64,000 bases of DNA. Origin: Asterias rubens (Eukaryota). The stretch's first letter is position 1; each line of letters starts with the position of its first letter. Location of the stretch: the NCBI RefSeq assembly GCF_902459465.1, contig NC_047072.1, positions 6,014,001 through 6,078,000 on the forward strand. Direction: 5' to 3'. The notes below the pieces were generated by a model. The model did no database searches, was not told the origin of the DNA, and was given only the letters and a program-made list of their open reading frames with translations. A program made the translations under genes and the position numbers. Below, in pieces: positions 34,705 to 63,772 of the stretch.

Positions 34705-34974
34705 NNNNNNNNNNNNNNNNNNNNNNNNNNNNNNNNNNNNNNNNNNNNNNNNNNNNNNNNNNNNNNNNNNNNNNNNNNNNNNNNNNNNNNNNNNNNNNNN
34801 NNNNNNNNNNNNNNNNNNNNNNNNNNNNNNNNNNNNNNNNNNNNNNNNNNNNNNNNNNNNNNNNNNNNNNNNNNNNNNNNNNNNNNNNNNNNNNNNNNNN
34901 NNNNNNNNNNNNNNNNNNNNNNNNNNNNNNNNNNNNNNNNNNNNNNNNNNNNNNNNNNNNNNNNNNNNNNNNNN
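34705..34974. other. Assembly gap (270 N)
   Basis: Run of N. Confidence 1.
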
Positions 34975-39260: not shown

Positions 39261-41842
39261 GCCATCAGAAAAAAAGAGACAAGACAAAGTACACATCTTA
39301 CAGTGAGTGTTGCCACAACACATTCACTTGTCCTCATTGAGGGACTGGCATACAGCCAATAGATAACCAATCCTCAATTATGCCAAAAGAAAACAACACA
39401 CAGAAAAGTAATAATCTTTCGATGTAAGTGTACATCTCTAAGATTTTAAAACTCATGCATACTTCCATCCACTCAAATATTTGCACTTCGTCTATCATTC
39501 CTATAAAAAAAAACCTTTAAGGTTGAAACTAAATTTTATATTAAATTGTTTAAAAACAATTATGATACTGAAGGTTTTTACCCTTAATTTCAAACCTATT
39601 AATTTTGTTATTAGTTGTTAAGCAGTTTATAATGTCTGTTGTTTATTTTGGTTCTGTAATGTTTGATGTTATGTTGTTGTTGATGTTTGTTTTGTATTTG
39701 CACCATTTCATTGTCCATTGCTCATGAACAGAAATGTACGTACTACTCTTCAAAGTCTTTGAACAGCTGTGAATTTGTTCATTTTCCGAAGAGTTTGCTT
39801 CCTCTGCGAATACAAGCTTAAAATTATTTAAAACTGCCAAGTCTGTTTTTAATGTCAGTTTAATTCAGTTTAGTTCAGTTTATTTCCACTCAATCAGTGG
39901 AATTGAGGAGAATGTGGATTAACTCAACCTTGTTGTCGAAGAGATGATTGACGCATTCTTGGGTCATGACCTCTATTTGTCAACTCCGGAATAAGCCAGG
40001 TGTTTCACACAATAGTTCATGTTATACAATTTCCATTGTGTAGTGAGCCTCTACCGCTGCATTCAAGTTCTGTTTTATAATTGTATTAACTTAAGCCAAT
40101 TACATGTCTAGACCACAAATACCTTCATAACACTGACACAGATTGAACAATTTAAAAATTCACAATTTGTTACATGTTTTAGTTGGCTAGAGCTAGACAG
40201 ACCCTAAGGTCAGGAATGTTTTGTGCTGAGTTACAACAGCACAGACACACTCATTTTACATGATAGTAACGGTAAAATTCTCAGTAGTAATGTTCCCGTG
40301 GCATTTACTAATAATAATTAGCATACATACCCCAAACTCCTCCGGTTTCTCTCGGGCTTTTTTGTAATTCACTTGCAGTTACAACGCTTTGAAAACTCAC
40401 CAAAATTCTCCGCTGTGTTCATTTTATGAGCCTTCAACGCCAATAGCATTTCATGGTGAACTTGGTCCCGTGAGAAAATTACTGCCTCCAGTGCAAATTT
40501 TCCCGGAAATACTATCCTCCGCCGACATTAAAAAGACGCTAGTTCCAGCAGCAAACGTTTCCGGTCAATGTATGAGGATAAAAACGACACATAACGTGAG
40601 AAAAGGAAAATTCATTTGAACAAATTCTCACATAATTTTAATAAAGTCAGTTCTGCATTAAAATATCACTGCTACTGAAAAAAGCGCAACAGATTTGGAG
40701 TCACTTTTGCGTTTTTCTTCGGGGCGCCGGCGGTTCACTCTAAATTATATCCTTGCGCGTCACTTAAAATTTCATTTTTTGTCCAACAAACTTCTATTAT
40801 TCTAGTAAAATATTCTCAATAAAAAAATGGCTCAAGGAGGATACATTCTTGTTTGTTTGTTTTGTTTTTTATTTTGAAATCTGAAACAAATTAAAATTGA
40901 CCTATTTTCCCTTGATGCGAAGGGATACTAACCCCTTCACAACCCACGATGAGTGGAGAATGCCGTCTGCTACAATTTTAGGGGAACCATTTTAAGGCTC
41001 GCTATTGGTCAACAGTGTGACAAACCTGCTATCTGATTGGCTAATTAAGAATGCGTTATGCAAATATCCTCACGATGGTCACATGCTGAGCTATTAATAA
41101 CCGTATCAAAAACAATTGTAAGCGTTGCTCTTGACTGGTTTACTGCTTATTTTGAAGTTAGTAGCAAGTAAGTCGTTTGGTAACCAGTGTTGTGGACTAA
41201 TATTGAGTATGACTATGATAACCAAGTAAAGTGTTTTTTCCATCATTAGGCTCTACTAGTTTGTGTGGGAGGCCTCCTGGAAACTGGTTGCGAGTCGGGG
41301 TGTTTTTTCCTAGAGTTCAGTAGGCCCAGGCCGACGTGACCTACCAAAAGTTTACGGTGCCAAAAATAACGCCCTCTGTTGACAATGTCAATGTCCTCTA
41401 TGCGGAAATAGGAGTGAAAACTTATTGCCAATTAATTTCATAGGCGTGGCAAAGAAACCCAAATAGTCTTCTCTGCCTGGTAGGACGTCACCCAAACGCC
41501 AACTTTCCACTAAAGCCTATCCTCAGAACATCATCCCTTGGAGTGCGTGAGTACAAGTCATAATTATTGATAAAAAAATTTAACTTTGTGCACTCAACCA
41601 CTTAACATACATTCTCTGTGCGCTCAAAGTTCAGCTTTGTGTTTTGTATTACATTTACAAAGTGCACCAACAACCTGAGTCGGAAGACTTGAAAGCTGAA
41701 GCACATTGAGGAAGGGCATCTTATGGATGGATCATGAGATTAGAGAGAACTATACAAGATAATTTCATATAGGAATTGTTAATTGATAAGTTGATACTTG
41801 TTCATCTGCATCATCCTCGCAGCTGTGCGTGTCATGTTTTCG

Positions 41843-41920
41843 AGTAGCCCCACTTGTGTGGTCAAGGCTAGCTGAATCCTTAAGGATTCAGCTAGCCTTT
41901 TGGCCAAACAAGTGGGGCTA
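41843..41920. mobile_element. Palindromic MITE
   Basis: agccccacttgtgtggtcaaggctagctgaatcc-ttaa-ggattcagctagccttttggccaaacaagtggggct. Confidence 0.7.
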
Positions 41921-41964
41921 GTTTTTGAGGTACTACATGTAGGCCTATGCCCTTTTCTGAAAAC

Positions 41965-42322
41965 CAATAAAACATCAAGCACAACTACTCCATTGGTGAC
42001 AGTATAATTCAGACAGTAAGTGAAGAAAGAGATCTTGGGGTAATCATCCATCAGTCACTAAATGCAAGTACCCACTGTGCGAAGGCAGTCAAAAGCGCAT
42101 ACAGAGTCCTAGGCCTAATCAACAGAACCATTACGAACAAAGACAAAACAACAATCATCAGACTATACATAGAACTGGTTAGACCACACCTAGATTACTG
42201 TGTACAGGCGTGGAGGCCTCATCTTCAAAGGGACATTGACCTAATAGAAAGAGTGCAAAAGAGAGCATTGCGAATGATTGGAGGTCTATCTCACCTAGAC
42301 TACGTTCACAGACTCACAGTTC
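41965..42322 (+). mobile_element. CR1-clade LINE ORF2 3' fragment
   Basis: Translates EERDLGVIIHQSL...LYIELVRPHLDYCVQAWRPHLQRDIDLIERVQKRALRMI, a typical CR1 post-RT region. Confidence 0.85.
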
Positions 42323-42688
42323 CAAACAATGCATGTGTTGATCTATTGTTTTAGAACATTTCTTTGATTTTTTTCTCTCAAAATTAGGTTTGTCAAACAA
42401 TGACTTTGTAATGGTTAGAACTACTAACTACACCCATCAGTGAAGATGTTTCATCTGTTGGACTATTGGGTGAATGAGCCTGGCTAAAGCACTAATTGGT
42501 CCTTGAATTGAAGGTAAGAGACTGCATCATAATATAACTGACCAGTATTTCATGAACTTTGACATAATCAAAATTAGATTACTGTTTTGATCCATATAAG
42601 AATGATAAACATTAAAACAATCTGTCATCTGAGCATGGAGGTAGATCTGAGTAAATGTCTTTCTTTAAATCCTAAGATTGTGTCAGAT

Positions 42689-45600
42689 ATGGCTGACCAG
42701 AGTGGGGAGACCATGGAAGAGGAGGAGATGGCCAGACAATCTCAAGAACCAGAACAAAGATCGAGAGCTGTTGTTGAAAACATTCAACCGTTGCCAGAAA
42801 CAAGAGACTTAGTGAGAGCAGAAAACACACAAATGCTTCAAGGTATAAACTTAAGGTATAAAGGTATAAACTGTGATTAGTATCAATCTGTACGCAGGAT
42901 TTGAAAATGAATATGTGACGATGAGTTGGGATAAAATATATGTCTAAACCAATGTAATTATTTCTTTGATTTGATTTCTTGTGTTATTCCGCACACTTAC
43001 TTAAGAATACACCTATAACCCTAGAGAAGGGTTACAACAATATTTTTAAAACTAATACAAACAAAGAGTTAGTAAAGAGCATTCTTTGTTTTAACCTAAT
43101 TATTTGTAGTATGAATTTCCTTTAACAAAATTATAAACGAAAAATTAAAAAGCAAATCTATGCAAAAGTACTCGGCTATATGTGGCACAAAACCTTTTTC
43201 CGAGGGTCAAGAGCATTAGAAAAATAATTTTCTTGCATTTAGGCCTATGTTTGTAATTCTTAAATTCAACAGTATCATGCAGTTTTTCTAAAAGAATAAT
43301 ACTTTGGACAAGAACATACAAAATGCATCCATTTCTTTTTAGTGTGGACAGATATGTTGATGAATTCTAAACTAATTCTAGCCAGATAATTTCTGTATTG
43401 AATATTATTTATAGAAAGAAAAAATTAAATTAAACAGAAGAAAACAAGTTGGTTTTAATTCTTCACTTAACGTACATCCTTGGTTCATTTTTATTGACAG
43501 CGTATTTGTTTAGTTTGTAACTTGCCTTACATGTAGCTATCAAAAAATTCATTGCTGACTTGGCAACGATTATGACAATCATGTAAGTCGCCTTAAAATT
43601 CAACAAATTTTCAATTTCCATGTAATTTGTTTGTTAACAGTAGATTGTACGGCTATAATTGATATAAAAACAGACTGTAAAATAACCAGTAAACTATTGC
43701 ATTTTTTCTTCATTGCCAACAGCAGGAGGTGTGATGCAATCTACGTCTCTACACCACACAGTAGGCAGCGGTAATTTGGCTGTTAGCAATCCTAGCCACT
43801 GTACAATCAACTATGTACATCTGAAGCCAGGAGCAACAGGTAAGCCACAAACATTACCAACTTCTGTCAATTTTGTTTTAGAAGATTTGGGTACTTTTTG
43901 TAACACAAAAACCAATGTCCACAGATTGACTTACACGGTTTGAAGATACAGATAATAGGAAAGCCTACCTTAAAATAAATACTTGCTGAAGTTTTGTAGT
44001 TTTTTAGAATTGAATAAAACCATGTCACTAAGACAAAAATAATTTTCGCGATTTGTTTTGCTCATTTCTCAGAAACTACAGCGACTCAGCAAGTAATGTT
44101 TTAAGGAAGCTTTCTACCCTTTAAGTACCATGTTAAGAAAACTAACCTCGAGTCTCAAAAACATTTTTAAAACATCAATGAAAACTGGTTATAATTGAAA
44201 ACTGGTTATAATTGTGGATATGGTTTGTTTTGATTGTTTTGATTGTGTTAAATATCATATAGAGGACTTTGGTAGTTGGGACAGTTTTGTATAAAGTCAA
44301 TGAATATATTGTGATAAGTTTTGCAGTGACACCATCAAAAGTAATGTCTGTAAAATGAGTTAGTAATGAATCAAATTCTATATCTAGATTGGCATCTGTC
44401 ATGCCAAAATCAGTTAAGCTTCACAACAATTTTCTCCACCGTTTTCAATTTTAATTTGTTAGCCAAATTCTCTCTTTAACTTTGTCTTCCAGAGGATGTT
44501 TTACCTGCATTTGAGAATTTAACTGCCTCATCAAAACAGAAACAAGCTTCGGATTCAGCAGTGAAACCAACAGGTAATTTACTCAATCAGAAACATGTCA
44601 ATCTAAGATAGTCATGCCTAAAGGAACATAACAGAATTGTTTTTATAACAAAACTGTTGCTGGCAGTGTAAGCACTTTTTGTTATCCACCATGTACATAA
44701 ACTGACAAACCTGATGAAGTTTGAGATCCATCGACTATCTCGGTCGCGAGAAAAAAAAAGTGAAAACAACGATCACACAGTTTGCATGTTTTTTTTTTTT
44801 TTAAATGAATAGAACGCTCACTGTGCAATAAACACCAAATGGGGAAGTAGTTTTATTTATTTCTCTTCAAATATGACATTTCATATGGAATATTTCAAGG
44901 GATGTTTTCTACTATCATCATCTTTGACGATTTTTCCTTACCAATTCTGTAATGTTCCTTTAATAGTCTCAAAGATTTGACAAAGTCTGTTTTCATTTGA
45001 AATTCAACTTTGATATTATAAGCAAAACACATTATTTAAAGAATTTAATCTTCTCGGTTTAACCATGGGCATTTTCTTCCACCATTGGTTTGACTTATTA
45101 CTTGTAGCGTCTTTCAGAAAAAAAGAAAAAGTAATTTTGTCTGAAATAGCACCAATATTGAAAAGTTTCGCCAAGACAAACCAGAAATGTTCAAATATGA
45201 ATTGTAGAAGTATCATAAACAAAATTATGTTTCATTCTCAAGGAAAAAAACATATTGAAGGCTTATAGGATTTGAGGCATTGCATGGTGAGGTATCAATA
45301 TATATATTTGGTTTGTGTGTTTACTTGCAGGGTAGAGTTTGTTCTTAGAGAACTGTCTTTCATTATTCTACTACCGCGGAGTAGATGTTCGGGAGACTTC
45401 TCAGTTCTGAAAAGAACTCCTGCTTTTTAACTACTGGGGTGGGCAGAAAGTATAGAAAATTGGCTGGGACTACTACTTTAGCTTATAGAATCGTTAATAA
45501 CTGTACTACCACGGAGTCAGTTCTTGAATTGGTCTTAATTGTTCAACTAGCTTGCTCTAGAGTCATTGTCAGGAGACTGAAGGGATGTTATAATGTAACA

Positions 45601-48600
45601 ATTCATAAATACCTCGGACAGTTTCGATATTCCTATTTGTGAAGAGCGCGTCACGTGGGTATAGTATAAACCTTTGTTTATGACCGGTAAAAAGTGTTAA
45701 TTCATGGGCATGACACGTGACCTTGTACCTGTTCTTGTAAGACAGTTTCTTCATTCCTATTGGTCCAGAGCAAAGGCTGAAACAGTTGTGCCACATCACG
45801 CGATACGCACCACGCGCACAGTATTCCCTTATAAGGAGTTGTTTACCCGAAGGCGGCGGAGGGCTTTACCATTTCATAGCTGGAGGGGTGTTGTGTTGAA
45901 AGAAATCATTTAACAATTTTTATTTTTGCATTTATTTTACTTTTTGACCAAAGAGTGATGATGTTTTTTACCGAAAAGGTATTTTTGAATGGGAATCAAA
46001 GTGTGTTGAATTGGTTTTCAACTAGTGGTTTAAACCCGCCGAGGCCTGGTTCTTTATAATTTACCTTGACTTCGTCTCAGTAAAAATATCAAGAACCAGC
46101 CCCCGATTTCACAAAGCTATGCGAAGTGTCGCAAGTGCAAGTTGCGACCGGTTACACGTCGTAAGTTTTGATGCGTATGGAATCCATTTCATCAAAGTTA
46201 CGATGCGTTGGATACGTCGCAAGTTCCTTGACAATGAGGAAGAACACGTCGTAAGTTACGACGACCCATAGGGTCGTCGTAAGAATGCTATGTTTCATTT
46301 GTTTACGTACAAAATGCATGAAAGGACATAACAATTACCACACGTAACTTCCGTGAACCAATCGGGAAGACACAAGTTTTAGTTTAGTTTAGTTTTATGT
46401 GACTTACACTGGCATAAAAATATAGAAATACAAATCGATACGAAAAAAAAAATAAAGAATCGAATGCCGCCGCCGCGTGCGCCTTGAATAAAGGCTAGGT
46501 AACTTGCAGCACCTAGACAACAAATGGAAATTTACCCCCCCCCCCAAAAAAAAAAGGGACGGGTAAAAGAAAAGAAAACAAACACATGCATAAAAAACGA
46601 ACACACATAAACTAAAACAACTAAACAAATAAATAATTATAAACCAAAAAACAAAAAAATACCTATTAAACACTAGTCCGAAACGGTTGAGTGTCTGCCA
46701 TCTTGAATGAACTATAATACACGACTGTTTCATGACCAAGTTGTACACAACATAAAACAGCCGCAGAACTTTAGCAGTTCATCCTCGTCCAAAGGGTAGT
46801 TTTTATTAAGAGTGAAAATGGTTTGAGTTGCGACTCGTCGCGCTTACGACGTGTTTGGTGAAATTGATTGTGGAACTCGTCGCAGCTGCGACGTGTCTTA
46901 GGTCTGCGACGCATCGCAAACCCTACGATGCGTCGCTACTTGCGATGAGTTTCGCAGGCCTCGTTGGGACTAAACCACTTGTTGAAAACCTCTTGACCAC
47001 ACATTGATTCCCTTATTTAACGCTGCTATCAGATTGTCAGCAAACAATTATAAATGGATAAATATAAATGGATGGTGTTTTAAGCCACGCCACTCCAGAA
47101 ATACAAGCTACATTCATCTCTGAATGTTTTTCTGAATTTATTATTGATGTTGTTGAATCAAGATTCATTTTTTTCCATATCACGCTTTTTGTTTTCAATC
47201 AGATGATGGAAGTGTGCAAGGAGCCCATCCAACGAAAGATCAAGCCCAGGTCGCTGCAGAGAGCTGTAGAAAGGCAATAAGAACTCATTATAGGAGTACC
47301 TATGTGAAACTGATACCATGGGAGGATGATGACACAAAACATATCGAAGATATCTTTACAGAATCAACATTGTGGAAATCTGGAGACAAATTGAAATCTT
47401 ATAAGGATATTTTCCTGCAGACAACAAGACATGGTGATGGCATAAAACGGGTGATTTTGATTGGGTTAGCTGGTAGAGGGAAGTCTACCATCATAGATAA
47501 GATGGCTTATGATTGGGCATGTGGTGAAGCACTGCAGCAGTTTGAGCTTGTATTTGTTATAAGAATGAGGGCAGTTGAACAAAGCACAGAGCTAATTGAC
47601 TCAATTTTTGAACAAGTTTTAGATGAAGATACTGGTGTAGATAAGAACTCGTTGAGTTCTTTTATCAGTCACAATCAAGACAAAGTACTGATCTTATTTG
47701 ATGGCTGTGATGAGTTAAAGACCCCTACCCTTGATGAAGCCTCATTTGGTTCAATTCTAAAGATCCTGAACTGTAAGAAAGACAGAGAGTGTTTTGTTGT
47801 AGTCACCACTCGCCCCTCTCACTACAACAAATTAGTGACAAGATCATTAATTCAAGAGCCTGTCACACGGGTCAGGGTTGAAGGTTTTGATACGGAAGAT
47901 ATCAAGAAGTATGTGAAGAGATTTTACTCAGAGGAGCACGTTAAAGCTGAAAAGCTTATTCAGATGATCAAATCCTCAAATGTTTTATCTGATTTGGCAA
48001 AGAGTCCAATGCTACTTCTGTTGATGTGTATTTTGTGGAGAGAGGATTCTAAACTCCCAGAAACACTGTATCGTATCTACAGTGAGGTATTGGAGTACAT
48101 ATTTCACAGAAAAACTCAAATGTCATCAGATGAGATATCGAAAGTAACAAATGAACTTGGGAAGATTGCCTTGCAGGGTCTTTTTGCTCCAAAACAACAG
48201 CTTGCTTTTCCTGAACAAGTGTTTGATGAACCAAATGTGCTTGAATCTGCCATAAAAGCAGGTATTCTTACTAGACACAAAGTCTTGAAGGGAATGAGAA
48301 GTCACAACAGCATTGAGTTCCTGCATAAGTCTTTTCAAGAGTGTTGTGCTGGTAAATACTTACAAAGCTTATTAGAAACCAACAAGGTAGAATTCCAGAG
48401 GAACCTGGAAGAAATCATCTTTAAAGGTAATGATTTTGAATATGTTTTGCAGTTTTGTGCTGGTGACAATATGGCATGTACTAATGGCATTTTACAAATA
48501 CTTACTAAAGTACAAAGCCAGACGCTGAAAGGCCTCCACTGCTACTTTGAGGGCCAGTCAAAAGATTTACCCCCCGTGGAGTTCATGAAGAATGTTCTAA

Positions 48601-49406
48601 CAGATCAGATAGACATTCATAAATGGAAAATGGACACTCTTAAGTCATTCATATACTTTCTTAGAAATGTTCATACCCACACAGAGGAAAACAAACAAAC
48701 TGATTATCTTGACAAGGTACAGTCAGTAGTGATAAGTGGTTGTCACTTGGGTGAGTGTATGTCAGATTTGGTTGACTCTATGAGCTTAATGACGAATCTT
48801 TCATTAGTAGAATTGGTTACGTGCACATTGAATGAGAGTACTGAAGAATATTCTGCATTATCAGGAGCAACCTCATCTGCTGCATTATGGGCCTATCACT
48901 TCAAGAAGATGAAGAACCTTCAGACGGTCGTCTTGAGTTACTGCTCATTGACAGTTGAAGATATGACACATATTGCTCCTGCACTGTGTGATCTGCCCAA
49001 CTTGGTTGAATTGGATCTTGAGAAAAATAACCTTGGTGGTTCCGCTGCATTATGGGCCTATCACTTCAAGAAGATGAAGAACCTTCAAAAGCTTGTCTTG
49101 AGTTTCTGCTCATTGGTAGATGAAGATATGACACATATTGCTCCTGCACTGTGTGATCTGCCCAACTTGGTTAAATTGGATCTTGGGAAAAACACCCTTG
49201 GTGGTTCCGCTGCATTATGGGCCTACCACTTCAAGAAGATGAAGAATCTTCAGAAGCTTGTCTTGAGTTCCTGCTTATTGACAGATGAAGATATGACACA
49301 TATTGCTCCTGCACTGTGTGATCTGCCCAACTTGGTTGAATTGGATCTTTGGAAAAATAACCTTGGTGGTTCCGCTGCATGGGCCTATCACTTCAAGAAC
49401 ATGTAG
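42689..49406 (+). CDS. NLR (NACHT-LRR) receptor, ~851 aa (exons 42689-42842, 43723-43839, 44493-44573, 47203-49406)
   Basis: P-loop GLAGRGKST, Walker B LILFDGCDE, VVVTTRP, PMLLLLMC, FLHKSFQECCA and LxxLxLxxC/N LRRs. Three short phase-1 exons splice in frame to the 2.2-kb NACHT-LRR exon. An upstream non-coding donor lies at ~42513. Confidence 0.88.
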
Positions 49407-51789: not shown

Positions 51790-51934
51790 NNNNNNNNNNN
51801 NNNNNNNNNNNNNNNNNNNNNNNNNNNNNNNNNNNNNNNNNNNNNNNNNNNNNNNNNNNNNNNNNNNNNNNNNNNNNNNNNNNNNNNNNNNNNNNNNNNN
51901 NNNNNNNNNNNNNNNNNNNNNNNNNNNNNNNNNN
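51790..51934. other. Assembly gap (145 N)
   Basis: Run of N. Confidence 1.
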
Positions 51935-53529: not shown

Positions 53530-56500
53530 ATGCATTGTCATTAATGTCAATGTCCTATATGCGGAAATAATATGAGGAATGGAAATTATTGGGAAATAAT
53601 GTGGATATTTCTTAGACGTGGACCAGAAACCCAAATAGCCCTCATCCCTGCTGGTAGGACATCACCAACCCGCCAACCCTCCATATCTTCAAAACATCAT
53701 CATTTGGAGTGCGTGTGAGTCTAGTTTATTGCTCCATGGTGTGAGCGACCATAGAGGAGTGACCTACATAATTAATGATAAAATACTTTTATTTTGTGCA
53801 CTCAATAAACTCAAACATAATCTCCGGCTTTGCCTTAAAGAAACTGTGAGCGGGAATATTTTTACGACCTCGCCACCAATTTCGATTCTGCCCGGTTTCT
53901 TTTTTTACCTCAGGTTGTATCTATTCGATTGGGTTAGGGTCAAAAAGTGTACAAAAAGTGGTTTTCATGGGACCGGTTTTCAAACTGTAGTTGTTTTACT
54001 CTCTCTTTCATCAGGATGTCATGCGGTAACCCAGACCTAGTAACTGGGGCGCTGTATGCCTATTCCTGTTTTCGAAATTGTGACATTATCTGTCAAACTT
54101 AGTATATACTAGGTCTAAGACCGATAACCTTACATTTCGAAAAAGGAATACAGCGCCCCTGTTACCGGGTCTATTATGCGGTATATAACCCTTCGTACAG
54201 GTAAGACAACAATTCAGTGGACTTGAAGTTAACTGGAGCGGATAAAATGGTGGCGACGTATGGAATTATCCCCAATTATGTTCAAACCCATATCTGTGGA
54301 CATTGTGTTTTGTGTAACAAAAAGTACAAACCCTAAGTCTGATACACCCTTTAAAGTGGACACTATTGGTATTCACTCAAAATAATTATTAGCATAAAAC
54401 CTTACTTGGTAATAGGTAATGGGGAGAGGTTGATAGTACAAATCATTGTGAGAAACAGTTCCCTCTGAAGTGAAGTAGTTGGTCAAACTTTGGCTTTGTT
54501 ATCTGACAACATCCATCAGTGAAGATGTTTAATCTTTTGGACTATTTTGTAATTGGGTGAAGCACTGATTATTCCTGGAATTGAAGGTAAGACTGCATCA
54601 TATTGCTGACCAGTATATCATGCACTTTGACATCATCAAAAAGAGATTGTCATTTGTAATGTATTCCTACATTATGTTAATGTGTATGCTAATGAACATG
54701 TCCTTAGACAGTGACATTGGAATGAAACATAAAAACAAGCTGTCATCTGAGTAAATGTCTTTCTTTGATTCATAAGATTGTGTCAGATATGGCTGACCAG
54801 AGTGAGGAGACCATGGAAGAGGAGGAGATGGTCAGGCAATCTCAAGAACCCGAACAAAGATCGATGGCTGTTTATGAAAACATTCAACCGTTGCCAGAAA
54901 CAAGAGACTTAGTGAGAGCAGAAAACACACAAATGCTTCAAGGTTAAACTTACTGTGATTAGTATCAATCTGTACGCATGATTTGAAATGAATATGTGAA
55001 GATGAGTTGGGATAAAATATATGTCTAAACAAATGTAATTATTTCTTTGATTTGATTTCTTGTGTTATTCCGCACACTTACTTAGGAATACACCCATAAC
55101 CCTAGAGAAGGGTTACAACAATATTTTTAAAACTAATACAAACAAAGAGTTAGTAAAGAGCATTCTTTGTTTTAACCTCATTAGTTGTAGTATGAATTTC
55201 CTTTAACAGAACTATATACGATCAACAAGTAAAAAGCCAATCTATGCAAAAGTACTCGGCTATATGTGGCACAAAACCTTTTTCCGAGGTACATGATTAG
55301 ATATGTTTCTGCCTTTATCATGTTTATGCTTTCACAAACAGTATCATGGACAGTTTTCTAAAAGAATAATACTTCGGACAAGAACATCCATTTCTTTTTA
55401 GTGTGGACTAGTCTGTTGATTCTTTAACGCTGTATCTTCTAGTTTCTACAAGTAGTTAATGAGCTGAGCATCTGATTCTAGCCAGATAATGTCTGTATTG
55501 TTTTTAGTTACTTGACGAATAAAACCATTCAATTCAATTCAAAATGAGTATTGAGCAAATTCCCAAAGTAAACTTTTGCATTTTTCATGTAGAAATTACT
55601 TTTCTTCATTGCCAACAGCAGGAGGTGCCAATGTGATGCAATCTATGGCTCTACACCACACAGACGGCAGCGGTAATTTGGCTGTTATAAATCCTAGTCA
55701 CTGTACAATTAACATTGTACAGCTGAAGCCAGGAGCAACAGGTAAGGGACAAACATTAGCAACTTCTGTCAATTTTGTTTTAAAAGATTTGGGTACTTTT
55801 TGTAACACAAAACAAAATGTCCACAGATTGACATTAAACTTACACAGTTTGAGGAAAGCCTACCTTATAATTACTTGCTGAGGTGCTGTAGTTTTTGAGA
55901 ATTTAGTAAAACCGTGTCACAAACACGTTTTACATGCCAAAATAATGTTTGTCTCACTGAGACAAAAATTATTTTTGTGACTTGATTTGCTTAAACTCAA
56001 AAATACAGCACCTCTACCACCACTAACTTCAAACTGTGTAAGTTTAATGCAAATCTGTGGACATTTTGTATTGTGTCTTACAAAAAGTACACAGACCCTG
56101 AGTCTCAAGAATATTTAACATAAATTAAATTTGGTTTCAACTTTGAAGTGGAACTGGGTTTTTTTTATTGTGTTATAATACAGAGGACTTTGGTAGTTGG
56201 GATAATTTTATATAACCAATGGAAATTACAAGGTTTGCAGTACACCATCAAAAGTTTGTCTGTAAAATGAGTTAGTGATGAATCAATACATCTTAGAGTG
56301 AGGTCCCTTGATATATATCTAGATTGTACATATGCCGTGCCACATTTTGCTCCAAATCAGTTTAGCTTCACAAGAGTTTTCTCCATCTTTTTCAATTTTA
56401 TTTTGTTAGCCAAGTTCTCTCCTTAACTTTGTCTTTCAGAGGATGTTTTACCTGCATTGGAGAAATTAACTGCCTCCTCAAAACAGAAACAAGCTTCGGA

Positions 56501-57733
56501 TTCAGTAGTGAAACCAACAGGTAATTTACTCAATAAAAGACATGTCAATCTGAGATAGTAATTCTTAAAGGAACATTACAGAATTGTCTTTTGCTAACAA
56601 AACAGTTGCTGGCAGTGTAAGCACTTTTTGTAATCCATTATGTACATAAACTGACAAACCTGTAGAAGTTTGAGATCCAGTTCCACCAACTAGGATATTC
56701 TACGAAAATGTTTATTTATTTATTTCCTCTGTTTACCCAGGGTGAGCCAAATCAGTGGGTAAAAAACTGGTTCCTATTGGGCCCTGCATAATGACATTGT
56801 TAAGAATAAACAATTGAACATATTAAAAAGTAAGCATAAAATCACATTATAAAATTATAATAGAAAAGTTGAAAACTAAGCTAAAATATGTAAGAATGTA
56901 AACGGAAAATTTAAAGCAATATAAGCATAAGACGAAGAGTAAAAGAAAAGTTACGAGAGTAAATTCACACAGTGAATAATAATAATAATAATAATAGCCA
57001 GTTTTTATATCGCGCTTTCACACCCGGAGGGCGTCCCAAAGCGCTTCACATTATTACCACTGGTCACTGGGCCTTAAACCATCTCAGCTCCCTGAGTATG
57101 CAGCCTGTGCAACATTAATATGCGCTCCTCGGAAAAGGGGGTTTTACATTGCCCTCATTGTAATGATTTGGCTGTCAATATAACAAAAAAATCTTCTGAA
57201 GAAGCTGCAAATTCCTTTATGTTCACCCTCAAATTATTTATCTAAAGGGGTAGCTTTCAGCTAGAGACGGGCGACAATGAGGTCTCCCTTGGCACAGCCC
57301 GACTTCACACCATGCACAACGCACAAACCATGGGGCGTGATGAGATGCTCAAGTCACAGTAATCTACGTGTCTAACCATACTCTCAAAAGAAACCTCTTT
57401 TGTTTGTAGTAGAATACTGGGTTTATCAAACAGCAAATGTGATTTAAATCAATGTCACAACATTCAACTTTATTAAAAGGGCTTCGTTTTGAGTTCAAAG
57501 TTTTATTTGTCGAAAATACAGCCAATAATGGCCCATCGGTACGAGTCTTCCCATGACTTTACTGTGTAGCTGTGTTTTTCTATACCCATCTCAGGTATGA
57601 GATGTTGTTGAATCAAGATGAATTTTTCCATATTATGTTTTTTGTTTTCAATCAGATAATGGAAATGTGCAAAGAGCCCATCCACCGAAAGATCCAACCC
57701 AGGTTGCTGCAAAGAGCTGTAGAAAGGCAATAA
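53530..57733 (+). repeat. Segmental duplicate of the NLR 5' region (homologous to ~41370-47280)
   Basis: Shared upstream blocks, exons 1-3, intron parts and the first 78 nt of exon 4. Copies differ by point changes and copy-specific TE insertions. Homology ends abruptly at 57733. Confidence 0.9.
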
Positions 57734-57792
57734 CACATTTTATCAATTGGGTCAAAATAATGCCTTATACTCAGAGGACATGCAGGCAGTAA
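54789..57792 (+). CDS. Truncated NLR paralog encoding only the N-terminal region (~164 aa; exons 54789-54942, 55619-55741, 56440-56520, 57656-57792); may be a pseudogene
   Basis: All GT-AG sites are present and the frame is intact, with one in-frame 6-nt insertion. It reads into non-homologous sequence and stops at TAA 57790-57792. No NACHT follows. Confidence 0.6.
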
Positions 57793-57994
57793 TAGGATTT
57801 TGTAGGTCACCTTGTTTGCATGTATATAATAAATAAGCGTTAATATTGATTTAAGGCCTGGCACTATTGGCAAATTAGTAATAAGCAAGCACTAATGATG
57901 AAAATTAGTCAGGACTTTTCCTGTTTTTATTTTATTTTGTTTTTTGTGAATAGGGAAGAGTGGGTGGGGATTTGTTACTTTTTTCAATGTTCAG

Positions 57995-58992
57995 ATTTGT
58001 ATACTTTTTTTGTCCTGCTCGTTGTCTGTTTGTTCTGTTATAATGTCCTGCTCGTTGTCTGTTTGTTCTGTTATAATTTCCTGCTTGTTTGCCTGCTTGT
58101 TTTATTATAATGTCCTGCTTGTTTGTCTGTTTGTTCTCTTATAATGTCTTGCTTGTTTGTCTGTTTGTTTCCTGCTCGTTGTCTGTTTGTTCTCTTATAA
58201 TGTCGTGCTTGTTTGTCTGCTTGTCCAGTTATAATGTCCTGCTCGTTGTCTGTTTGTTCTGTTGTAATGTCCTGCTGGTTTTTTATCTCTATTATGTCCT
58301 GCTTGATTGTCGTTCGTTCTGTTATAACATGGAGGTAGAAATATTTCTACCTCCTTGGTTATAATGTCCTGCTCATTGTCTGTTTGTTCTCTTGTAAGGC
58401 CAAATAGTAAAAAATACCAGTTTAAAAAAGAGGAGGATGAGAGCAAGATGGCCGCTGAGTATTTTAAATCAAACAGGCCACCAATTCTTCAGTTTGAACC
58501 CATCGCAAACATATTTTATACGTACATGTATTTTTTGCATGAGGACCTGTGTTAACACTATTAACAGGGTCGGCTTACACTAAGTAAAAAGATTGGCTTT
58601 TGTGTAGGCATTCACTAATACTTGTTTTATGAAACGGACGGTTACACGTGTTCAAGAGAATCACGTTAGATTCGGGAAGAGCTCCTAGGCCGGTCCTTTT
58701 AAAAAGATGGATTAAAAGTAAAATTAAGAAAAAGGATGCAGCCCCCCCAAAAGGATGCAGGCGGGGACGATCAACTTTTTTTATTTTTTATTTGGCCTAA
58801 TGTCCTGCTTGATAGTCTGTTTGTTCTGTTATAATGTCATGCTTGTTGTCTTGCTCGTTGTCTGTTTGTTCTGTTGTAGTATCCTGCTTGTTTGTCTGTT
58901 TGTTCTGTTGTAGTATCCTGTTTGCTTGTCTGTTTGTTCTGTTGTAGTATCCTGCATGTTTGTCTGTTTGTTCTGTTGTAGTATCCTGCATG
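57995..58992. repeat. Low-complexity minisatellites (gtttgtctgtttgttctgttataatgtcctgct-type), two blocks at ~57995-58395 and ~58795-58992
   Basis: Degenerate ~30-35-bp units. Confidence 0.8.
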
Positions 58993-59096
58993 TTGTGTTC
59001 TAGTTCATGTTATACATCATGCAACTTTAAACCATCACAACAGTCAACAAGAGTTTTAACAAATGAATTCCTTGTCTTTCTGTGATTGATCATCAG

Positions 59097-62000
59097 GTGC
59101 TGGTTACACTGCAACCCCAGGAGATGTCCGATCGTATGCTTGCATCTCATGAAGAAGTAATGAAGAATGGTGAGACTCATCACAGACAACATACCCTGGA
59201 GGAGTTTGCTATCGATCACTTTAGACCACCTCCTAATAAGAGGACATTGAGTAGCGCTGTAAAGCATCGTACTAGGGTGAGTCTTTCAAAACCAATCACT
59301 TTAGGCCACCTCCCAAGAGGACATTTGTAGGGCTGTAAAGTGTCGTACTAGGGTGAGTGTTTTAAACCAACTTAGACCACCTCCTAAGAGGACATTAAGT
59401 AGGGCTGTAAAGTGACATATTAGGGTGAGTGTTTGAAAACCAATCACTTAAGGCTACCAACTATAAGAGGACTGTAAAGCGACGTACTAGGGTGAGTGTT
59501 TAAAAACCAATCACTTTAGACCACCTACTATTAGAGGACGTTAAATAGGGCTGTAAAGCATCGTACTAGGGTGAGTGTTTGAACCAATCATGAGGCTGTG
59601 TCGACCAGCCTGGGTTCGAGTAAAATTAGTCAACCTTTACTTATTGATTAGTGGGTGTATTTTATTAAGCTGTACTGGAGGATTTGTTTGATCTGTACAG
59701 GATAACCTGTGGAGTTACACCAAAGAAGCTATTAGACAACCTCTGATGAAGAAACTGCTGAATAATCCGGAGATGGCTGAACAAGCCTGCGATGCTTTTG
59801 AAGATATCCTTTTAAAATATCCAATAATCATTCAATCATCGATCAAAATCATTCAATCAATCAATCAATGCATCTATTGCTGATTGGTCATTTTGATCGA
59901 TTGATCAATCGCTCCATTACAAAAGAAAGCTTGTCGAGGAGAGATCTGCGGACACGATGTGTGAACTCACTAGGACGTTATAAACTTGTTTATTATCAGC
60001 AGGGAAAGTGTTTGTCAATGTCAGTACTTGAAGTTCTGTTGTGATAAAAACTTTGCTATTTTAGTTTAAGAACCAACTTTACATTACTCTCCTTGACTTC
60101 TTTGAACCTGTTCTGAAGTACATGGGTGACTTCCCAACAAAGAGGTCATATCGTGATCGTCTTGATAATGACCTCTCAGTTAAAATATTTGAATCTCCAT
60201 TGAAGAATGAGCCATTGAAGGATGAGATTTATTGTCAGCTCATTAAGCAGCTGACGGATAACAGACGAAAGTAAGTCACGTTCGTTACCTCTTTCTCAAA
60301 AGCTACGTTACTTCAGAGGGAGTGGTTTCCCACAATGTTTTATACTGTCAACAGCTCCCCATTGCTTGTTACCAAGTCAGTTTTTATATTAACAATTATT
60401 TTGAGTAATTACCAATAGTATCCAGCGCCTTCAAGCTTCTCATTATAAATGATTCCCTGTAGATTGAGTGAAGAGAGAGGTTGGGAGTTGATGTGGCTGG
60501 TTACCGGCATCTTTGCCTGTAGTCAAACCCTCATGCCAGAAGTTAAAAAGTTTCTACGTTCAGCAGATAATCAACTTTCTGCTGAATGCCTCCATCGATT
60601 GAAGAACCTGGTTCGTTTTGGTCAACGTAAATACCCCCCTCACTTGGTGGAAGTACAGGCAATTCAGCACAAGACTAGACAGATATATCACAAGGTGTAT
60701 TTTCCTGATGACACAGCTGAGGTAATTAGTGATCGCAATTAACAGACAGGAATCGAAAACTTGTTTTTGATGTACCGATTTAAAACTTAAATCAAAATAT
60801 TGCTGCTTATATGTATATTAATAATATTAAAAGATAAAACTCAAAGAGTTTATCACTAGTTCCAGTTGAATGAGCTAAAACAATGAAAACAATAAATGAC
60901 CAGTACTTCATACTTGTCAATCTCCCCATTCCTTTGACCATCAGCTGATCAAAGGATTGGTTTGTCTGTCAGTCATTGGTTCTATCTGGCGGTCGACAGC
61001 TCGCCATGGCAGCTTCCTAGTTGTAGTTAGTGTTTTGTCAGTATTTTCATTGTATGCGTTTTGTGTTTTTTTCTGTATTTCCTGAATTTTTGTTTTCATC
61101 TCTCCTGGTTTTTCTCTCTTGACTTTCCAAAAGGGCTTTTAGACTTCACTGTAATTTTGCACTTTATAAAAATTGGTCATTTTATATTGTTATTAATTTG
61201 TACCATTATTATTATGTGTTGATAGAGGAAATGAATAGGTCTTCTGCAGTGATGGAAACATGCTTATCAATGATATTTGTTATTGTATACTGAAACCATT
61301 TGCTCTTTGTTTCTTCTTTGCTTTTAGGTTTTTGAGGTCACTTCAGGAACGAGGGCCAAAGATATCTGTCGGAATATTGGTCAACGACTACGGTTGAAAT
61401 CCTCGGAAGGATTCAGTTTGTTTGTTGAGGTTGATGGTTATGGTAAACATATTCAATGCAGAGTTATTTAAAAGAACATACTGTTAAGTAGGTTTCTGTC
61501 AATCAAGTTCCATGTTGATAATATACAAGTCCCTAGAGAAATCCACATGTATACTAGTGAGGAAAGCCATCTTCCATCATTCATTCATGAATCTTGTCAA
61601 CCCAAGAGTATTAATTATGATAAGTCGTCGTTGATTATTCTCCATTTATATAACACCCAAGCAGATCCTTGCCATTTGATTGGAGGATTGTCCGTCACGT
61701 GATAGCAAATAAAAGTACCATTGCACGCTGAGTCACTCGCCGTGCTTTTTCGTTCCATCCGAAAAGTACCATTGCACGCTGGCACGCTGCCAGCGTGCAA
61801 TGGTACTTTTCGGATGGAACGAAAAAGCTGAGTAAAAACATCACTGCGTGCGCGTGTCTTTGGTAACGCAGCAGGTGTTACTGCAAGAAGGCATAGTAAA
61901 ATTACTAGCATTCGGCTTCTACAGTTGAAATTGTTTGTTTTGAAAGTTGTTTCTTTCAATCAAAATGACAAAGTTCTACTTGGATGTTATATAAAACAAA

Positions 62001-63772
62001 TAATGAATGTTTTTCATTCGTGCAATGGTGCGAATATGTTCATTCGTTGAAAGCTGGAATGTTCCATTCAACTCGGCTCCGCCTCGTTGAATAGAACATT
62101 CCATCTTTCAACTCATGAACATATTCGCACCATTGCACTCATAAACATTCATTATGTGTATAATATTTGTTGTCGTTTTGTAGTGACCAGTGTACCAGTA
62201 CCAGAGGGTGATTTCTTTCTTGACTTTATGCAATATCTGATGGGAAGGATCAGCAGGACAGCTAGACCAAGCAGAGAAGGTAAGAGACAGGTCAAAGCAA
62301 GAAAGATGAATGTAACGGCCCTTTCATCCATGTCCTCTGAGAGCAAAGTGTTAATAGCATCAGTTGCAGCAAATATCAGATGATTGTTGAATTTTAGTAT
62401 GGTACGTGTAGGTGCCAAGCAGGAGAGAGTGCTCGCCGAATTCAAGCTCTTCTATTCAGCAGAGTGTGTGTTTGAGCCTTGGTCGAGACACTTTTGTCCC
62501 TTGTATAATATGAGCAAGACACTTTTGTTGAGCTACATTTGGCAGTACAGGTGGTATTACTCCCGACGAGCTTTGAGATGCCCTTTTGGTGTCTAAATCG
62601 CTTTATAAAAACTGATTATTATTATTATTAGGATATTAATTTATTTTGTTAAGCATAAATGAACCTTAAACCTTGACTGTATACTCGGTACTTTTCCGAG
62701 TCAATCAAAGAAACCATGCTGTACTACATTGGTGGGGTTTAAGCCCACTTTAAAACACACATTTGGGATGTGTTTTGTTTCTTGACATTCATTTATGTTT
62801 GTGTTGTGCACCCAGGATCAATGGCAATAACCTACAAGGTAGCCTTCATGAAGAAGTTATGGACCAACACAGTACCAGGTCGTGATCCAATAGCTGATGT
62901 CATCTTTCACTACCACCAGGAGCTTCCTATGCTCCTACGAGGTTACCATAAATGTTCCAAGGAGGAAGCTGCTCAGCTAGCTGCTCTTCAGTACCGGGTC
63001 AGATTCGGCGATGATAAATCTGAGTTTCAGAATATTCCTCGGATGACGAAGAAATTACTGCCGTTTGATATGATTAGGGTTATGTCTCCTGAGGAATGGA
63101 AGAGGGTAAGATCTGGTTTACTGATTGATTTGCCTATAGAAACAAAAGAATTCTGATTAAATCATACACCATGTAGGTCAGCCTTTGTCCTCGATAAAAT
63201 ATTCTTAAGTTTTTTCCAGGGAACAAATGCCTGTTTGAGTCTTGTAGACACCGTTATTCAAGATAGCAAAACTCTGCACTTTGATCTCCTGTCTGACAGA
63301 CTCTATGTGAAATGTCAAAGTTCACTTGTCGCCCTGTTGTAGTTGTGATCAAAGCTTCTTGCATCTTCACCCAGTCGACTGTTGAAGATTTCATATTTAG
63401 TTATCCTTAAACTGTTTTGACAATTTTCCTTTTAATAATTCTTCTTTTGAAATTGGCAGAGAGCAAGTGTTTATCAGGTAGCATAAAAGTTAATTTATTT
63501 TGTAGATTCATTTCACGTTTGTGTGTTTGTGCAGTTTGGGTACTGTTACAATGTTTGTTTAACCATACTGATATTTCCTTACAGGCTTTTTGTAATACCA
63601 TTGTGATATTGTTTATTACCGCAAACCAAATATACATTATAATTTTTCTTGACAGGCTATTGTTGCTGCTTACAACCAACATTCTGGCAAGTCTAGGGAT
63701 AAAGCTAAAATTGCGTTCTTGAAGATCGTTTACAGATGGCCAACGTTCGGCTCATCATTCTTTGAAGTCAAG
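59097..63772 (+). CDS. MYO7A: Myosin VII tail fragment, second MyTH4-FERM module (exons 59097-59276, 59701-59803, 60108-60270, 60463-60721, 61328-61442, 62184-62279, 62816-63105, 63656-63772; continues beyond the window)
   Basis: [121 protein letters not shown] and WPTFGS.FFEVK match the recalled MYO7A C-terminal half. No motor, IQ or SH3 exons are found upstream. Confidence 0.9.
59221..59590 (+). repeat. Tandem array (5 units, 70-80 bp) derived from the exon end plus 5' splice site
   Basis: Each unit is ttagaccacc...gctgtaaag..(cgtac)tagg|gtgagt...aaccaatcac. Confidence 0.85.
59804..60107 (+). other. U12-type (minor spliceosome) AT-AC intron
   Basis: 5' end ATATCCTTT, branch site CTCCTTGAC at 60089-60097, 3' end AAC. 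Removal restores CDAFE-A-VLKYMGD in frame. Confidence 0.92.
61700..62150. mobile_element. Two palindromic interspersed elements in a myosin intron
   Basis: cttttt-cgttccatccgaaaagtaccattgcacgctgg...ccagcgtgcaatggtacttttcggatggaacg-aaaaag, and caatggtgcgaatatgttcat...atgaacatattcgcaccattg. Confidence 0.65.

Follow-up and report, generated by a model that had tools for sequence, protein, structure and literature searches.

A probable lineage-specific chimeric gene of Asterias joining NLR 5' exons to a duplicated myosin VII tail

The 64,000-nucleotide stretch of Asterias rubens DNA analysed here (the window; NC_047072.1, G000:C12:6014001-6078000, from an assembly of 417.6 Mb, with coordinates below given as window positions) carries exons for the tail of a class VII myosin directly downstream of a partial copy of an NLR gene, which raises the question as to whether two truncated copies have become a single gene. 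Our preferred answer, to which we give a probability of roughly 85%, is that they form a lineage-specific chimeric gene of Asterias in which NLR 5' exons and a myosin VII tail encode a motor-less MyTH4-FERM protein whose reading frame has been kept open by selection. The fusion of the NLR-derived exons to the myosin VII tail is transcribed and in frame.

Two parental genes and the fusion transcript

The upstream half of the locus (53543-57733) duplicates in tandem the 5' part of a neighbouring NLR gene and is collinear with 41384-47280. The parent and the copied flank are as follows.

42689-49406, + strand: 5' part of the parent NLR gene, with exons 1-3 at 42689-42842, ~43720-43839 and 44493-44573 and a large NACHT-LRR exon from 47203
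53543-53824, + strand: 5' flank of the NLR copy, a possible co-duplicated promoter or 5' untranslated region; collinear with parent 41384-41616 in blastn blocks of 74-96% identity

Collinearity of the flank extends further in blastn blocks, with 54503-54800 corresponding to parent 42424-42700. Exons 1-3 of the chimera share 75-92% amino acid identity with those of the neighbouring NLR gene and have the same splice sites exon by exon. In the parent, the open reading frame at 47214-49406 matches Pfam NACHT (5.4e-26) and LRR families, while in the copy the NACHT exon contributes just 71 nt, and neither the NACHT NTPase domain nor the LRRs are left. Homology to the NLR gene stops at 57733 (parent 47280), 1364 bp before the myosin acceptor at 59097, exactly where an earlier reading made from the letters of the window (the sequence-only reading) had placed the break. 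Relatives of exon 1 with 85-91% amino acid identity are found at C18:4403552-4403719, C18:7673872-7674030 and C23:6680053-6680211, from which we take the N-terminal segment of the chimera to come from a small NLR subfamily.

The downstream half derives from another chromosome. The segment 58977-67042 aligns to C14 220347-213926 across both exons (~85-95% identity) and introns (~73-83%), and because the homology spans the introns too the myosin half is a DNA-level duplicate and not a retrocopy. It begins at ~58977-58990, ~110 bp upstream of 59097 and inside the parental intron that follows the SH3 exon, so that 1.24 kb separate the NLR and myosin homologies. The sequence-only reading had proposed looking for a separate full-length MYO7A gene and comparing it with the tail; such a gene is present on C14, where residues 24-2151 of the full-length myosin VII P0009 (2155 aa) are matched in order by tblastn, and which retains the splice sites of the copy, those of its U12-type intron included. 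When the same query was run against 194 kb around the window only residues 1683-2128 matched, all within 59698-65961, and residues 1-1682, covering the motor, IQ neck, first MyTH4-FERM (MF1) and SH3 exons, gave nothing, bearing out over the wider stretch what had been noted of the upstream DNA. The tail exons are therefore without a motor. No PF00063 myosin-head match was found within 1.15 Mb on the window's contig, the nearest lying 1.15 Mb away. With the chimera on C12 and the myosin parent on C14, the tail is not made at the motor gene's own locus.

In order to follow the transcript we relied on contigs from four public runs (X1, X2, X11 and X12) aligned to 54750-60749. Runs X1 and X2, which come from two different studies, give exon-sized pieces only, with zero depth in intronic bins, and therefore behave as spliced RNA; runs X11 and X12 cover the introns as well and therefore behave as DNA. 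Record 3 of run X1 (250 nt, 0 mismatches) links 56447-56517, 57653-57724 and 59095-59201, and record 25 of run X2 joins 57653-57724 to 59095-59201, also with 0 mismatches. Once the letters common to both sides are resolved the splice junctions are 56520 to 57656 and 57726 to 59097. The donor at the fusion point, AAG/GCAATA (the stroke marks the exon boundary), lies between 57726 and 57727, 7 bases before the NLR breakpoint; an identical latent site is present in the parent NLR gene between 47273 and 47274, where it is ordinary exon sequence. Donor and acceptor are both phase 0. The exons and the two special introns of the gene, all on the + strand, are listed here.

54789-54942, + strand: chimera exon 1, NLR-derived; ATG at 54789, donor AAG/GTTAAA, RNA-like X1 record 1 over 54789-54904
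55622-55741, + strand: chimera exon 2, NLR-derived; X1 and X2 contigs over 55620-55741
56440-56520, + strand: chimera exon 3, NLR-derived, 27 codons; X1 record 3 and X2 record 24
57656-57726, + strand: chimera exon 4', 71 nt from the start of the truncated NACHT exon, with the GC donor; X1 record 3 and X2 record 25
57727-59096, + strand: fusion intron, GC-AG, between exon 4' and tail exon m1
59097-59276, + strand: tail exon m1, equivalent to the parental linker after the SH3 domain; acceptor CAG/GTG conserved with C14, RNA contigs over 59095-59275
59701-59803, + strand: tail exon m2, followed by the U12-type intron
59804-60107, + strand: U12-type AT-AC intron; 5' ATATCCTT, branch site TCCTTGAC, 3' AC, with the same signals in the C14 parent (C14:219198-218896)
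60108-60270, + strand: tail exon m3, start of MyTH4; RNA contigs 60109-60270 run on into m4 (X1 record 5, X2 record 27)
60463-60721, + strand: tail exon m4, MyTH4 core; Pfam MyTH4 1.2e-16, 5mv9 E 2.4e-33, RNA contigs 60502-60723
61328-61442, + strand: tail exon m5, FERM F1; C14 homology, splice sites, part of the model equal to P0191
62184-62279, + strand: tail exon m6; part of the model equal to P0191
62816-63105, + strand: tail exon m7, FERM F2; Pfam FERM_M 3.7e-09, part of the model equal to P0191
63656-63772, + strand: tail exon m8, the last inside the window; Pfam FERM_M 2.2e-07
64432-64515, 65842-65961 and 66890-66961 (window-equivalent; L009:432-515, 1842-1961, 2890-2961), + strand: tail exons m9-m11, past the window end; stop TAA at L009:2959-2961

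As the sequence-only reading had described, eight intact MYO7-type exons begin just past the SH3 position: m1-m8 are all open with recognisable splice sites and match the C-terminal MyTH4-FERM, m1 being the post-SH3 linker, and apart from the AT-AC intron the introns between the tail exons are all GT-AG. Together m1-m11 encode a complete C-terminal MyTH4-FERM module. Read from the ATG at 54789 the 15-exon model forms a single frame of 674 codons, and its product is 100% identical to P0191 (XP_033636075.1), the Asterias rubens 'myosin-VIIa-like isoform X2'. This entry was reached via a 616-aa Acanthaster match; exon m7 alone, used as a query against the protein representatives, returned no near-identical entry. 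In RefSeq isoform X1 the acceptor of exon 2 lies 3 nt upstream, and in isoform X3 the 27-codon exon 3 is skipped, with exactly those 27 residues absent; the frame is kept in both.

The locus thus has two identifiable parents, introns kept in both copies, a fusion transcript and a continuous frame. The NLR half comes from 41384-47280 and the myosin VII half from C14, and with the spliced contigs and the RefSeq identity this substantiates the suggestion that two partial duplications had fused. The routes by which the fusion had been expected to splice fared less well, as two GT donors in NLR exon 4, a jump from exon 3 to 62184 or 62816 and a start at the ATG at 59124 appear neither in the contigs nor in the three RefSeq isoforms. 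One contig carries 14 extra letters upstream of 54789 that have no match on the 54750-60749 stretch.

The fusion intron is made up in part of a 33/34-bp minisatellite (58011-58327 and 58817-58994) on either side of a dispersed repeat (58444-58800) with at least 500 candidate copies in the genome. A YY1-like motif had been pointed out at ~58444 and is indeed there; it starts at the first base of this repeat, inside an intron that is spliced out, and is therefore not a local promoter signal, so we rejected it as a promoter.

In a separate observation, an X2 contig over 54775-54935 shows eight differences from the window, and the seven listed are all the parent NLR letters at 42675-42835; expression in run X2 therefore extends to the parent NLR gene or a closely related paralogue.

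A partial tandem copy of the NLR gene, with ~1.2 kb of its 5' flank, its exons 1-3 and the start of the NACHT exon, ended up upstream of a partial myosin VII copy from another chromosome, which begins ~110 bp inside the post-SH3 intron and carries the last 11 exons. The latent GC donor, coding in the parent NLR gene, is spliced to the native myosin acceptor at 59097. The co-duplicated flank may supply the promoter, in which case expression would probably be under NLR-type regulation, and the free C-terminal module (MF2) may bind a diverged set of MF2-type ligands or compete with myosin VII for its ligands. The 'immune promoter' and 'adaptor' function suggested earlier are likewise putative.

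The predicted product

The predicted 674-aa product consists of 142 NLR-derived residues followed by a 530-aa myosin VII segment made up of a short linker and the MyTH4-FERM. No Pfam family was matched by residues 1-145, while residues 262-666 match MyTH4, RA_2 (F1 lobe), FERM_M and an IRS-type PTB (F3 lobe), with PF00784 MyTH4 at 4.7e-30 over residues 262-357 of P0191. In an AlphaFold model built on 17 sequences the pLDDT is 80-95 over most of 220-674 and below 50 over 1-171 and 182-213; the NLR-derived N-terminus is predicted to be disordered and the linker is poorly predicted as well. The model shows a three-lobed FERM packed on MyTH4, with the predicted fold intact.

By structure the top match of the model is human MYO7A MF2 with harmonin PDZ3 (PDB 5MV9; PMC5493754), all lobes of which are found in the chimera (TM 0.91, 60% identity). 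By sequence, residues 167-669 match 5mv9 with E 1.2e-209, 3pvl with 2.1e-36 and 3pzd with 7.9e-17, placing the chimera closer to myosin VII MF2 than to MF1 or myosin X. Compared with MYO7A, the chimera has no motor, neck, MF1 or SH3 and bears the 142-aa NLR-derived N-terminus, and several otherwise invariant residues are changed. In MYO7A K2189 contacts harmonin PDZ3c, and K2118N and G2163S weaken harmonin binding (PMC5493754). Sequence comparison indicates that the equivalents of K2189, K2118 and G2163 are all kept in the A. rubens chimera, whereas the A. amurensis copy described below is without two of these harmonin-binding-relevant residues.

Sequence evolution and competing explanations

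The same chimera is found in Asterias amurensis (XP_071800973.1, 667 aa), with 91% identity and the same NLR-derived N-terminus and junction, and the frame is open in both species. In a maximum-likelihood tree the two chimeras form the sister group of the C14 myosin VII tail (support 99/98), on a long chimera branch and with a parent branch of length zero. Between the tail and its C14 parent dS is 0.34 and dN 0.072, a ratio of 0.21. When amino acid changes were polarised with three outgroups 22 fell on the chimera stem, 21 and 19 on the A. rubens and A. amurensis branches respectively, and 1 on the parent, with 24 ambiguous, so that the chimera lineage has at least 62 changes against 1 in the parent. 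Amino acid divergence between the two species amounts to 7.7% in the NLR-derived part, 12.7% in the linker, 5.6% in MyTH4 and 10.3% in the FERM; another motor-less MyTH4-FERM gene, used for comparison, stands at 1.7% where the chimera stands at 9%.

The tail exons might belong to a full-length myosin with its motor exons far upstream or in the N gaps, or the junction might be misassembled, and the two N runs at 34705-34974 and 51790-51934 leave some room for this. We consider such an explanation almost negligible in probability, since the 194 kb hold none of the missing exons and the nearest myosin head is 1.15 Mb off, the transcripts start with NLR-type exons that have their own ATG, and the same protein architecture is encoded in the independently assembled sister species. 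A misassembled join, which the sequence-only reading had named as a possible refutation, is moreover ruled out by the DNA contigs of the other runs, as X11 (57679-57829) and X12 (58963-59212) cross both breakpoints; nor are the exons silent, given that the spliced contigs of X1 and X2 cover the junction and tail exons. The in-frame ATG at 59124 could in principle start a main product consisting of the tail alone, transcribed from an internal promoter at 57.7-59.1 kb, with the NLR-derived exons incidental. This seems very improbable, although less so than a hidden motor, because X1 and X2 have zero depth across 57750-58349, their signal at 58350-58549 stems from the repeat, and all three A. rubens RefSeq isoforms and both A. 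amurensis isoforms begin with the NLR-derived MADQSEE. Somewhat less improbable, and still unlikely, is a more specific proposal under which the chimera would be part of the sea-star NLR system, its MyTH4-FERM a bait or decoy for myosin VII ligands or pathogen factors and its high amino acid rate a mark of positive selection; the N-terminal segment of the chimera is common to at least four NLR genes and would link the product to these receptors or to the way they are regulated.

The most serious competitor is that the locus is a functionless by-product, real and transcribed and slowly decaying, with a frame that is open only because of its youth, and a number of observations weigh on that side and against selection on the frame. 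The substitution rate is highly asymmetric, the parent's basic C-terminal tail has been replaced in the chimera, and of the 92 alignment columns without variation in 14 other MyTH4-FERM tails, 11-12 differ in the chimera. Recent amino acid evolution is near neutral in every region, FERM included (5.6-12.7% by region compared with 1.7% in the comparison gene); intron differences to organism B of ~3.7%, a rough value biased by its being drawn only from contigs passing a 95% filter, put the recent amino acid change near the neutral rate, if roughly. Exons 2 and m1 have 15 listed differences to organism B, 12 of them nonsynonymous; recent dN/dS values are rough. The A. amurensis chimera has M and D in place of the K2189 and G2163 equivalents, and the 'RNA?' labels of runs X1 and X2 are a guess. 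A decaying by-product is however hard to reconcile with a 674-codon frame open in two species, with usable splice signals in all 15 exons, U12 intron included, and with exonic length differences, both from the parent and between the species, that are all multiples of three. In a neutral simulation at 10% neutral divergence a tail without a premature stop since the duplication had P=0.0025, and whereas a neutral coding sequence should have gathered ~16 indels between the species, only 3 are seen, all in frame (P ~3e-5). The change on the stem branch also lies well under the synonymous rate. We therefore hold decay without function to be possible but clearly the less probable account, and favour a chimeric gene maintained by selection; in our reading it is a fast-evolving gene with its open frame under selection, whose rate may reflect either relaxed constraint or adaptive change.

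One local pattern in m1 stands apart. Over its first 86 nt (59101-59182) all 8 organism-B differences are nonsynonymous and 7 of the 8 fall at codon position 2. Another reading frame was considered as the source and rejected, as two + frames and one antisense frame all carry stops; an antisense frame at 59010-59267 is open, yet the same sites are its codon position 2 and it offers no explanation either. As none of the checked frames explains the pattern we treat it as a small-sample oddity.

Known counterparts and neighbouring features

RefSeq already lists this gene under a generic name, but literature searches returned nothing on its mixed origin, nor on any headless myosin VII from sea stars. 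It adds a further case to a kind of gene origin that is already known. In functional terms its closest analogue is headless myosin X (Hdl-Myo10), a natural brain isoform in which the MyTH4-FERM tail is kept and the motor absent (PMC6345916); the chimera is likewise a motor-less, myosin-derived protein with a MyTH4-FERM tail, but its tail comes from a duplicated locus of its own, on a different chromosome from the parent, and is driven via exons from an unrelated gene.

The Hdl-Myo10 isoform arises from a promoter inside Myo10. Chimeric new genes formed by partial duplication and fusion include jingwei and Sdic of Drosophila, and these are the nearest evolutionary analogues, sharing with the Asterias gene intact parents, partial copies placed side by side, a new splice junction and fast evolution. 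The chimera differs from them in combining an NLR 5' end with a myosin cargo-binding tail, in consisting of DNA copies that keep their introns and in using a latent GC donor inside a coding exon.

Sea stars also have an older motor-less MyTH4-FERM gene, the comparison gene above (XP_033647507.1, 628 aa, C2:19866712-19874185, - strand), with orthologues in Acanthaster planci, Patiria miniata and A. amurensis. Like the chimera it encodes ~610-630 aa with a disordered N-terminus and a single MyTH4-FERM starting from the same post-SH3 position, and no motor match was found on its own contig among the candidates scored. Unlike the chimera it falls in a separate long-branched clade, evolves slowly and has an N-terminus unrelated to NLR. 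The presence of one old, conserved gene and one young one suggests that the motor-less myosin VII tail is a design that recurs and is viable in sea stars.

The locus is of interest as a clean gene birth, in which both parents survive, the breakpoints are mapped to ~20 bases or better and the fusion donor is visible as coding sequence in the parent. It also offers a natural experiment on a free MF2 module, whose equivalent in human MYO7A carries deafness mutations, and through the NLR 5' end a cytoskeletal cargo module has come under regulation that may be of an immune type. That interest would be greater if the fast evolution were adaptive or linked to immunity.

Several minor features were also recorded. 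MyTH4 matches with several in-frame TAA codons are present at C16:29409-29875, ~20 kb from a myosin-head gene (C16:49693-62395), and may be a decayed tail or an intron read-through artefact. A 77-bp tandem repeat starts inside the 3' end of m1 (59216-59591; C14:219476-220111), its units repeating the exon end and the donor ACTAGG/GTGAGT; shifted matches in the C14 parent span ~8 units and the chimera has fewer, more decayed ones. The two Asterias proteins differ in length by 6 aa, and the difference falls in this repeat region. Within the m5-m6 intron, at 61645-62170, lies a ~522-bp element of which the genome holds more than 40 further copies with 99-100% identity. Inside it are a perfect 41-nt hairpin (61744-61828) and additional inverted repeats, and it has the look of a very young, non-autonomous element that is probably still mobile.

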